Assembly (NCBI GenBank): GCA_013115145.1
Contig: JAAPAO010000066.1
Span: forward strand, 1 to 64,000
Reading direction: 5' to 3'
Length of the DNA: 64,000 nucleotides
Source of the DNA: Perkinsus chesapeaki ATCC PRA-425
Lineage: Eukaryota > Protista > Perkinsozoa
Each line of letters opens with the position of its first letter. Within the stretch, counting starts at the first letter, position 1. The notes under the pieces were generated by a model that was given only the letters and a program-made list of their open reading frames with translations, did not search any database and was not told the DNA's origin. Both the position numbers and the translations under genes were made by a program. Shown piece after piece: positions 40,491-52,659 of the stretch.

Positions 40491-40807
40491 CTCACTAGTA
40501 AGGATAGGCTTATCTCTCACTAGTAAGGATAGGCTTATCTCTCACTAGTAAGGATAGGCTTATCTCTCACTAGTAAGGATAGGCTTATCTCTCACTAGTA
40601 AGGATAGGCTTATCTCTCACTAGTAAGGATAGGCTANNNNNNNNNNNNNNNNNNNNNNNNNNNNNNNNNNNNNNNNNNNNNNNNNNNNNNNNNNNNNNNN
40701 NNNNNNNNNNNNNNNNNNNNNNNNNNNNNNNNNCGCTTATCTCTCACTAGTAAGGATAGGCTTATCTCTCACTAGTAAGGATAGGCTTATCTCTCACTAG
40801 TAAGGAT
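40491..40807. repeat. 25-bp tandem minisatellite (CTCACTAGTAAGGATAGGCTTATCT) spanning an assembly gap
   Basis: Identical head-to-tail copies on both sides of the N run, with no spacers. Confidence 0.95.
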
Positions 40808-45345: not shown

Positions 45346-46310
45346 ATGAGTTCTCGTGTTGTAGTGAAGTTTCACTTCAAGTCGGAAATACTCCGAATAA
45401 GAGCTGTTGCAGAGGACTTTGATTCGATCGACAAGGTCCGAGAATACGTGGCTGACTGCTGGCCGGAGCTTCGTGGTAAAGACTTTGAGATTCAGTACAA
45501 GGACTACGGTGATGTTAAGAGAGTTCTCAACGAGCATTCGATAGATCATGCTTTTGATGTCGCCCACGATAAGGTCCGAAAAGTCACTCAGATCCCCTGT
45601 GTTGATTTCTTCGTAACGGAGAAGGTCAATGTTGCTGATAACAAGCAGGGTGAGGCTAAGATACCAGAAGAAAAGAAGCAACAAGAAGCTGCTAAGGAGG
45701 GTACCTGCCCTGCTATGAGCAAGTGCCCTTATATGGCTGCTAAGGAAGGTACCTGTCCTGCTATGAGCAAGTGCCCTTATATGGCTGCTAAAGAGGGTAC
45801 CTGTCCTGCTATGAGCAAGTGCCCTTATATGGCTGCTAAGGAGGGTACCTGTCCTGCTACGAGCAAGTGCCCTTGTATGGCTGTAAAGGAGGGTACCTGT
45901 CCTGCTATGAGCAAGTGCCCTTATATGGCTGCTAAGGAAGGTACCTGTCCTGCTATGAGCAAGTGCCCTTCNNNNNNNNNNNNNNNNNNNNNNNNNNNNN
46001 NNNNNNNNNNNNNNNNNNNNNNNNNNNNNNNNNNNNNNNNNNNNNNNNNNNNNNNNNNNNNNNNNNNNCCTGTCCTGCTATGAGCAAGTGCCCTTATATG
46101 GCTGCTAAGGAAGGTACCTGTCCTGCTATGAGCAAGTGCCCTTATATGGCTGCTAAGGAAGGTACCTGTCCTGCTATGAGCAAGTGCCCTTATATGGCTG
46201 CTAAGGAAGGTACCTGTCCTGCTATGATGTGTCACTATGCAATGGTCTGTCCACAGAACTACTGTTGTTGTTGTCCTTGCCCATATTGCTGTCATTACTG
46301 CAGTTGTTAA
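45346..46310 (+). CDS. PB1-domain protein A with tandem 16-aa Cys-Pro repeats and a poly-Cys tail (spans an assembly gap)
   Basis: N-terminal VVVKFHFKSEILRIR...CWPELRGKDFEIQY, then (AAKEGTCPAMSKCPYM)n with at least 9 units visible (48-bp repeat), ending CPQNYCCCCPCPYCCHYCSC*. The frame change across the gap is attributable to the arbitrary N length. Confidence 0.85.
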
Positions 46311-47238: not shown

Positions 47239-48459
47239 ATGTGTGATCAAGTCGTTCTAAAGTTCCATTTCAATTCGGATATCGTCCGCGTGCGTGCCAG
47301 TCCCAGCGACTGCGACTCTGTAGCGAAACTGCACGAGTATGCAGCTGACGCCTGGCCAGAGCTCAGAGGCAAACACTTCGATATCGTCTTCTGTGACGGT
47401 CTAGGTGCGAAGGACATCTTGGATGAGGAGAAGCTCGGTAAATTGTTATCAGAGGCATCTGGCTCTGATAGCACTTCGAGAAACATCGGCCTATTCGTGG
47501 AGGAGCGCGCTGATGATGATGAGGCAGCAGCAGCAGCAACTGCTGATGAGAAACCCGGTACTACTGCTGATAACGATGGTGCATGTCAGTGCCCAATGAA
47601 GGGTCCTTGTCCATGTATATGTATGTGCCATCATATGATGGGTTGCTGTCCTGCTATGGCCAAGTGCCCCTATATGGCAGGCAAGTGTGGTGATGCTTGC
47701 AAGTGCACTGNNNNNNNNNNNNNNNNNNNNNNNNNNNNNNNNNNNNNNNNNNNNNNNNNNNNNNNNNNNNNNNNNNNNNNNNNNNNNNNNNNNNNNNNNN
47801 NNNCTCTGGCAGGCAAGTGTGGTGATGCTTGCAAGTGCCCTGCTATGATGGGTTGCTGTCCTGCTATGGCCAAGTGCCCCTATATGGCAGTCAAGTGTGG
47901 TGATGCTTGCAAGTGCCCTGCTATGATGGGTTGCTGTCCTGCTATGGCCAAGTGCCCCTATATGGCAGGCAAGTGTGGTGATGCTTGCAAGTGCGGTGAT
48001 GCCTGCAAGTGCGGTGATGCCTGCAAGTGCGGTGATGCCTGCAAGTGCGGTGATGCTTGCAAGTGCGGTGATGCCTGCAAGTGCGGTGATGCCTGTAACA
48101 AGGCATCTTCAAGCTTATCGGGCTTGCCGGTAATGAGATGCCATGGCATGTTGGTCTGCCCTGTTATGAGACACCACGGTTCAGTTTGCTGCCCCATGCG
48201 CAAGTGTTGCAACCCTGCTGCTGTCGAGAAGCCCGCCTCTGAAGGTTCCCAGACCCCAGACGCTTCTCAGGAGTCTTGCTGCCAGAAGGAGCGTTCTTCT
48301 TGCCCTTGCTGCTGCTTCTGCCCAGCTGCTGCCATGGAATGCCCCTACATACACCGTGCGTGCATGTGCCCTATTATCCGATGCCACCTAATGATGATGA
48401 TGGCCAATTGCCCTGCCCACTGTTGCGCTCCTGTTGCTGAGACCGCAAAAGAAGACTAG
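47239..48459 (+). CDS. PB1-domain protein B fused to a metallothionein-like Cys-rich region
   Basis: VVLKFHFNSDIVRVR...AWPELRGKHFDIVF, 26-aa repeats MMGCCPAMAKCPYMAGKCGDACKCPA, then 7 tandem KCGDAC units and a Cys/Met-rich tail. Single ORF through the gap. Confidence 0.85.
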   Translation: MCDQVVLKFHFNSDIVRVRASPSDCDSVAKLHEYAADAWPELRGKHFDIVFCDGLGAKDILDEEKLGKLLSEASGSDSTSRNIGLFVEERADDDEAAAAATADEKPGTTADNDGACQCPMKGPCPCICMCHHMMGCCPAMAKCPYMAGKCGDACKCTXXXXXXXXXXXXXXXXXXXXXXXXXXXXXXXXLAGKCGDACKCPAMMGCCPAMAKCPYMAVKCGDACKCPAMMGCCPAMAKCPYMAGKCGDACKCGDACKCGDACKCGDACKCGDACKCGDACKCGDACNKASSSLSGLPVMRCHGMLVCPVMRHHGSVCCPMRKCCNPAAVEKPASEGSQTPDASQESCCQKERSSCPCCCFCPAAAMECPYIHRACMCPIIRCHLMMMMANCPAHCCAPVAETAKED

Positions 48460-52587: not shown

Positions 52588-52659
52588 GGGCGTGTGGCTC
52601 AACGGTAGAGCATCTGACTCCAGATCCGACGGCTGTCCGTTCGAATCGGGCCAAGCTCA
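52588..52659 (+). tRNA. tRNA-Trp(CCA) with two stem mismatches (functional or pseudo)
   Basis: 72-nt cloverleaf: GCTC/GAGC D-stem, loop CTCCAGA, T-loop TTCGAAT, A discriminator, TTTT terminator. G5.A68 mismatch in the acceptor stem and a U.C mismatch in the anticodon stem. Confidence 0.85.

Follow-up and report, generated by a model that had tools for sequence, protein, structure and literature searches.

A PB1-domain protein of Perkinsus chesapeaki with a cysteine-rich tail of Cys-Pro-x-Met repeats that may bind soft metals or heme

Cryptococcus CMT1 and CMT2 are large modular fungal Cu-metallothioneins that shield the pathogen from host copper. They have one idea in common with the Perkinsus chesapeaki gene described here (gene B), namely an enlarged, repeat-built, Cys-rich protein in a pathogen inside copper-loading phagocytes. 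CMT1/2 are not homologous to gene B, have a different Cys spacing and lack a PB1 domain. P. chesapeaki is chiefly a clam parasite, and P. marinus is the oyster parasite. Large ciliate and mollusc metallothioneins (MTs; PMC1808422, PMC7826182) typically grew in modules, through internal duplication. The family 7 MTs of Tetrahymena, also an alveolate, resemble the tail of gene B in being unusually long, in the hierarchical duplication of short Cys modules and in placing Lys next to Cys (CKC; PMC1808422), and they are cytosolic, as predicted for gene B. However, Tetrahymena MTs are built on C2X6, CxCxxCxCCK and CKCxxCKC motifs, have few Met and lack both PB1 and CPxM. Bivalve and gastropod MTs (PMC7826182; Helix pomatia CdMT, PDB 6qk5) share with gene B the [CxC]x3[CxC] spacing, in which Gly/Lys separate the cysteines, and multi-domain MT expansions akin to the gene B tail occur in some molluscs (PMC7826182). 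These mollusc MTs are 66-78 aa long with 26-32% Cys (PMC7826182), whereas the gene B tail exceeds 260 aa, has 22% Cys, is rich in Met and Pro, and is fused to PB1.

Two further groups of proteins are relevant. The heme-regulatory motif (HRM) proteins HO-2, Hap1 and Bach1 (PMC2742820) resemble the tail in their basic-CP-hydrophobic motifs, which lie in disordered regions and are sometimes clustered; they carry far fewer motifs per protein than the tail and have no CKC runs or poly-Cys clusters. NBR1, p62/SQSTM1 and Par6/aPKC share the PB1 fold with gene B, which keeps the predicted basic-face Lys and differs from them in a degenerate OPCA acidic face and in lacking ZZ, UBA and LIR. In the literature searched, we found neither a PB1 protein described with a Cys-rich repeat tail nor a Perkinsus MT or any comparable buffer for metal or heme. 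The architecture of PB1 plus Cys-rich tail and the CPxM module appear to be new.

We analysed a 64,000-nt stretch of P. chesapeaki DNA (the window) in which five PB1-domain genes lie in + strand tandem between 45346 and 53750, with starts at 45346, 47239, 49352, ~51635 and 53328. Gene B is the second of these, and its start aligned with the start of 12 paralogs. The third gene (49352) encodes two ZZ zinc fingers and GK-dipeptide repeats and is NBR1/p62-like. The features of genes A and B are given in Table 1. The original prediction that a PB1 domain is joined to a repetitive tail rich in Cys was borne out by the ORF, the fold match and the repeats. It had also guessed that the DNA came from Perkinsus as an oyster parasite. 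The genus was right, since P. chesapeaki KAF4671592.1 is identical to a paralog encoded on a different contig; the species is P. chesapeaki and not P. marinus. An exact look-up of the gapped gene B product returned no record.

Table 1. Features of gene B and of its upstream PB1 paralog, gene A (window positions)
Feature	Positions	Strand	Remarks
Gene A (upstream PB1 paralog): PB1, 16-aa unit in 9 or more copies, poly-Cys end	45346..46310	+	
Gene B: intronless ORF, 406 codons including 31 X	47239..48459	+	stop 48457-48459
PB1 domain (aa 1-92), beta-grasp, gene B	47239..47514	+	AF2 model, Foldseek, paralogy
Acidic Ala-rich linker (aa 93-113), gene B	47515..47577	+	read from translation
Cys-rich head (aa 114-132), gene B: CxC, CPC stretch, HH	47578..47634	+	
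First 78-nt (26-aa) unit; 76 nt visible, cut at unit position 76 by the gap	47635..47710	+	
Assembly gap, 93 N, inside the 78-nt array of gene B	47711..47803	.	missing length predicted as 39+78n nt
Partial unit (from position 38), then two 78-nt units, the last merging into the hexapeptide array	47804..47994	+	
18-nt array, 7.1 copies = KCGDAC x7, [CxC]x3 periodicity	47969..48095	+	
Non-repetitive C-terminal 120 aa: 20 Cys, 10 Met, 6 His, 7 Cys-Pro, CC/CCC clusters	48097..48456	+	

An AlphaFold (AF2) model of the gene B PB1 domain, built on the paralog alignment, had a pLDDT of 83 and the element order bb-a-bb-a-b, as in the beta-grasp. The modelled region thus has the ubiquitin-like beta-grasp and the length (~80-90 aa) of a PB1 domain. 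The best Foldseek matches were the PB1 domains of NBR1 (plant and human), aPKC/Par6 and p62 (E 5e-5 to 1e-3), and the top matches also included p40/p67phox and MEKK3 (probability 1.00, TM 0.6-0.7). Residues 1-92 were 36% identical (E 1e-17) to the next gene, which has Pfam PB1 and ZZ matches. Pfam PB1 (PF00564) did not match gene B at E ≤ 1; it matched 4 of 13 aligned paralogs (best 4e-08). The assignment needed a fold comparison because a profile of the 13 paralog PB1 domains found nothing among PDB sequences.

We observed that Lys8, on the basic face in strand 1, is invariant across the 13 paralogs. The OPCA stretch of gene B (FCDGLGAKD...DEE) keeps Asp53 and the later DEE and has G, L and A where the paralogs are acidic; the P. 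olseni ortholog shows the same reduced pattern, and the acidic stretch is well formed in several gene B paralogs. We take the Lys8 and OPCA positions to map onto the corresponding p62 residues. By analogy with established PB1 biology, the gene B PB1 would be mainly basic-type (type B) and dock onto acidic-type (type A) partners. The retained Lys and the degenerate OPCA face suggest that it likely docks on OPCA-bearing partners and does not self-polymerise.

The assembly gap interrupts the 78-nt array of gene B. The last unit position before the gap is 76 and the first after it is 38, and all visible 78-nt units start in phase 0 of the ORF. Assuming that only repeat DNA is hidden in the gap, the missing DNA amounts to 39+78n nt. 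This length is divisible by three for every n, so the frame is kept at any copy number. We infer the continuity of gene B across the gap from this repeat register rather than reading it, and the divisibility of the 93 N by three is a coincidence. Gene A contains a 97-N gap (45972-46068) whose nominal length breaks the frame. Its register predicts 21+48n missing nt, and gene A is therefore probably a single ORF.

Tandem Repeats Finder (TRF) and in-frame reading confirmed the 26-aa repeats and the seven tandem KCGDAC units of the original prediction. TRF reported a 78-nt unit x2.4 (47807-47994, 98% matches) and an 18-nt unit x7.1 (47969-48095, 96% matches). The tail has at least four copies of the 26-aa unit, and KCGDAC occurs 10 times in gene B, seven of them in tandem. 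Over the known tail, defined as the 261 residues from residue 114 onward, we counted 58 Cys (22%), 24 Met (9%), 23 Pro, 8 His (3%) and 5 aromatic residues (1.9%). The motif counts were 17 CxC, 9 CC, 15 CxxxC and 2 CxxC. The clusters of CC and CxC that had been noted earlier are thus present, and the claim of CxxC clusters is weak because the tail has only two.

Cys-Pro was the motif that stood out. It occurs 17 times in the known tail, nine of them as CPxM, and the following residue is hydrophobic or Ala in 15 of the 17. Shuffling the non-repeat C-terminal 120 aa showed that Cys-Pro is enriched (7 vs 2.0 expected, P ~0.0008), as is CPx[MIL], and that CxC, CxxC and CxxxC do not exceed their shuffled frequency. 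This enrichment, together with the conservation of CPxM in P. olseni and in gene A (below), identifies Cys-Pro-x-Met as the family hallmark. In sequence, this hallmark is HRM-like; it also supplies a thiolate and, at a distance of three residues, a thioether, a pair that might serve as a Cu(I) site. A single-sequence AF2 run of the tail gave no confident fold (pLDDT 35), which is weak evidence given the single-sequence input and may be compatible with a ligand-dependent or disordered tail; a metal-binding tail in its apo state would be expected to look this way. A search of the ESM Atlas with the tail gave no usable match.

We identified two partial P. olseni proteins, FOL46_007536 and FOZ62_016455, as orthologs of gene B. 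In both P. olseni assemblies, the contigs end inside the Cys-rich repeats (L015:10001-10647 and L016:5731-6110), which is why the ortholog is annotated only as a partial protein. Gene B therefore breaks three independent short-read assemblies and is in consequence missing or truncated in current Perkinsus proteomes. The PB1 domains of the two species are 84% identical, with dN/dS ~0.07 and dS ~1.4 (near-saturated synonymous sites). PB1 is under strong purifying selection, and this is good evidence for a real gene. The P. olseni tail (22% Cys, 13% Met) uses the same words in another arrangement: CGGEACKC, HGMMG and CPAMNKCPYMAAKEG with CC or CCC. The other P. olseni strain has KCGDEACKC in place of CGGEACKC. 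Every Cys-Pro of the P. olseni tail is a CPxM (10/10), and KCPYM is visible three times in each species. Because the ortholog combines a constrained PB1 with the same tail vocabulary, we regard gene B as real and constrained. As far as sequence can tell, it is a Perkinsus-restricted gene of predicted expressed type. Protein homology searches revealed no P. marinus ortholog, a word-index homology search found nothing, whether run with all 406 aa or with residues 1-110 alone, and Pfam found nothing in the P. olseni orthologs or the gene A end.

The module is shared with gene A. Each 16-aa unit of gene A (KEGTCPAMSKCPYMAA) contains two CPxM and no other Cys. A CPAMxKCPYM module matched ten times in 41.7 Mb of P. 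chesapeaki, in genes A and B only; a reversed control matched nowhere, and a metagenome scan for the module gave no match. Both CxC and CC are absent from the gene A units, and in its spacing the shared ancestral module is therefore unlike an MT. On L015, the 5 kb upstream of the P. olseni ortholog contained no ORF for a PB1 protein resembling gene A. At least 18 paralogous PB1 N-termini occur in the P. chesapeaki genome, and most other gene B paralogs have acidic helical tails with few cysteines. This PB1-headed family (at least 18 proteins of ~350-390 aa) has acidic, helical-looking tails with repeated 'DxLxDxGFV' segments, and its genes cluster head-to-head and in tandem on contigs C1261, C1962, C1489 and C365 (loci L005-L014).

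We searched the Cys-rich region against MT families, as the original prediction had proposed, using Pfam, PDB and HMMER, and found no significant MT match. Membership of the tail in the MTs was not upheld: Pfam gave no MT family for the gene B protein at E ≤ 1, NCBIfam gave chance collagen-like matches only, and no published MT Cys pattern fitted. The bivalve alpha, beta1 and beta2 and gastropod beta3 Cys patterns (Table 1 of PMC7826182) each had 0 regex matches in the tail, where only the generic [CxC]x3[CxC]x3[CxC] sub-pattern was present, within the hexapeptide run. Tetrahymena C2X6, 7a CxCxxCxCCK and 7b CKCxxCKC (PMC1808422) likewise had 0 matches; the gene B spacing is CKCx3CKC. No sequence similarity to Tetrahymena MTs was detected by Pfam or by an exhaustive HMMER search. 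A six-frame genome search for PF00131 and PF01439 returned nothing, and is uninformative since its controls were equally silent. The tail does show the broad MT features (high Cys, few aromatics, CxC/CC), yet it has 3% His and 9% Met and no motif enrichment outside the repeats other than the Cys-Pro described above. On sequence comparison, we place the tail in no known MT family.

The proposed likeness to mollusc MT fared no better. The best MT among PDB sequences was snail CdMT 6qk5 (E = 2.1, bias 24, a high compositional bias). The exhaustive HMMER search of 1.84 billion representative proteins yielded 49 matches at E ≤ 0.001, all aligned on the hexapeptide run only; no match extended over the 26-aa unit or the C-terminal 120 aa. 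We inspected 14 of the 49, and these were bacterial repeat proteins, including Hexapep (Pfam), six-residue-period repeat proteins and a few small bacterial CKCGD-repeat proteins; none was a mollusc MT. The matches were thus confined to the hexapeptide and bacterial where inspected, and the mollusc-MT likeness is therefore a short periodicity that also arises in unrelated bacteria. A hexapeptide beta-helix reading was rejected: the match reflects G-D-A-C periodicity over 42 residues, and gene B has no Hexapep match in Pfam. The original prediction also cited a presumed oyster MT peptide very close to CKCGDACKC, which was not found in the literature searched.

Four small bacterial or metagenomic proteins (P0019, P0043, P0050 and P0026) carry a CKCGDxCKCGD-type repeat, and one comes from a Phycisphaerae MAG. 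P0019, P0043 and P0050 have a hydrophobic N-terminal leader, and all four have weak or borderline Pfam Metallothio_2 matches only. They may possibly form an unannotated secreted MT-like family.

The origin of the KCGDAC run could be traced within Perkinsus. The hexapeptide is already present inside every 26-aa unit, the 18-nt copies differ at synonymous third positions only, and in P. olseni a CG(D/E)ACKC-type element occurs once or twice at the array head. Because the element is in each 26-aa unit and in P. olseni, the run is a recent in-place expansion and not host DNA. Acquisition of the run from a mollusc host MT gene, which the original prediction had allowed for, is effectively refuted by this local 18-nt expansion of an element shared with P. 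olseni (CGGEACKC / KCGDEACKC). It is true that the bivalve alpha domain contains the [CxC]x3[CxC]x3[CxC] spacing too (PMC7826182) and that snail CdMT matched weakly; however, that match is composition-driven, the tail lacks any full mollusc domain pattern, and none of the 49 HMMER matches extended beyond the run.

We consider soft-metal binding, MT-like and tethered to PB1, the single most likely function of the tail, a tentative assignment that falls somewhat short of an even chance. It is favoured because the tail has CKC runs, CC/CCC clusters and few aromatic residues, grew in modules as large MTs do, and belongs to a parasite in a copper-rich host setting. Bivalve (oyster) phagocytes store copper in granules, and intracellular vibrios need copper resistance there (PMC12064177). 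The Cys content counts against a metal reading (22% vs 26-32% in bivalve MTs; PMC7826182), and Cys-Pro, the enriched and conserved motif, may point as much to heme as to metal. The main rival accordingly takes the Cys-Pro dipeptides as HRMs that would bind ferric heme through the Cys thiolate, making the tail a PB1-tethered heme sponge or sensor. The tail agrees with the published HRM description, and the three visible KCPYM have its CP core, basic N-flank and hydrophobic C-flank (PMC2742820). The density of Cys-Pro in the 261 tail residues, its being the sole motif enriched in the non-repeat end, its invariable CPxM form in P. olseni and the gene A units that contain no other Cys all speak for heme, and HRMs usually lie in disordered regions, consistent with the unfolded tail prediction. 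However, an HRM model does not account for the KCGDAC run, the CC/CCC clusters or the CxC motifs, and known HRM proteins carry few motifs, not dozens. Cys-Pro also occurs in some metallothioneins. We judge a heme array to be unlikely, if a serious contender.

Readings without a specific ligand were also weighed. The tail could be an S-acylation substrate, anchoring the protein in the manner of a cysteine string, or a Cys/Met redox buffer that is sacrificed to the oxidative burst of the host. Genes B and A both have CC and CCC clusters near the C-terminus, Met is high in both species (9-13%), the protein is predicted to be cytosolic with no transmembrane segment, and Pfam and the exhaustive HMMER search found no homologous ligand-binding family. 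Yet the regular, conserved CPxM and CG(D/E)ACKC suggest a specific geometry over bulk thiol, and typical acylated strings lack the hydrophilic, Lys-rich character of these repeats; we hold such a role to be distinctly improbable. It is more doubtful still that the tail is fast-evolving low-complexity sequence that expanded without a function of its own, leaving PB1 alone to matter. The 96-98% identity of the units implies recent expansion, P. chesapeaki and P. olseni arrange their repeats differently, the paralogs bear quite different tails, and neither the exhaustive protein search nor the metagenome scan found a relative outside Perkinsus. Against this, the motifs persist in P. olseni despite near-saturation of PB1 synonymous sites, the frame is kept over >290 codons, and Cys and Met abound in the non-repeat end too.

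Under soft-metal binding, the gene B product would be a two-part protein, putatively cytosolic. Its 92-residue PB1 may dock onto an OPCA-bearing PB1 partner, for which the adjoining PB1-ZZ (NBR1/p62-like) gene is a conjectural example. The remaining 290+ residues would form a disordered Cys/Met/Pro-rich tail, built by repeated local duplication of the CPAMxKCPYM module and the CG(D/E)ACKC element. Since the N-terminus is non-hydrophobic, the tail cysteines would be reduced in the cytosol. The tail could coordinate soft ligands through thiolates and thioethers, with Cu(I)/Zn likeliest and Cd possible; Cu(I) is favoured because of the mix of Cys, Met and His. It would then act like a metallothionein of large, modular build anchored to a PB1 scaffold, MT-like by convergence, with a putative role against host metal. 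A fuller scheme, which we put forward as very unlikely in its entirety, is a PB1-addressed sponge: the tail would load Cu(I)/Zn or heme, PB1 would join filaments of the neighbouring PB1-ZZ protein, and the cargo would be condensed or disposed of autophagically, aiding survival in copper-rich phagocytes.

The haemocytes of bivalves stock copper, and it is inside these cells that Perkinsus species, parasites of economic importance, live. Should the tail bind Cu/Zn or heme, it would represent a new module for handling metal or heme that evolved independently, and the first on a PB1 scaffold domain, tying ligand buffering to PB1 assemblies. Gene B is also a clean case of a Cys-rich protein made de novo, by tandem duplication, from a 13-aa module and a 6-aa element.

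The window contains four N gaps of 93-98 nt (252-349, 40637-40733, 45972-46068 and 47711-47803), and both of those that we examined (45972-46068 and 47711-47803) sit in coding tandem repeats. A tRNA-Trp (CCA) gene lies at 52588-52659 on the + strand, within the region of the fourth PB1 gene.
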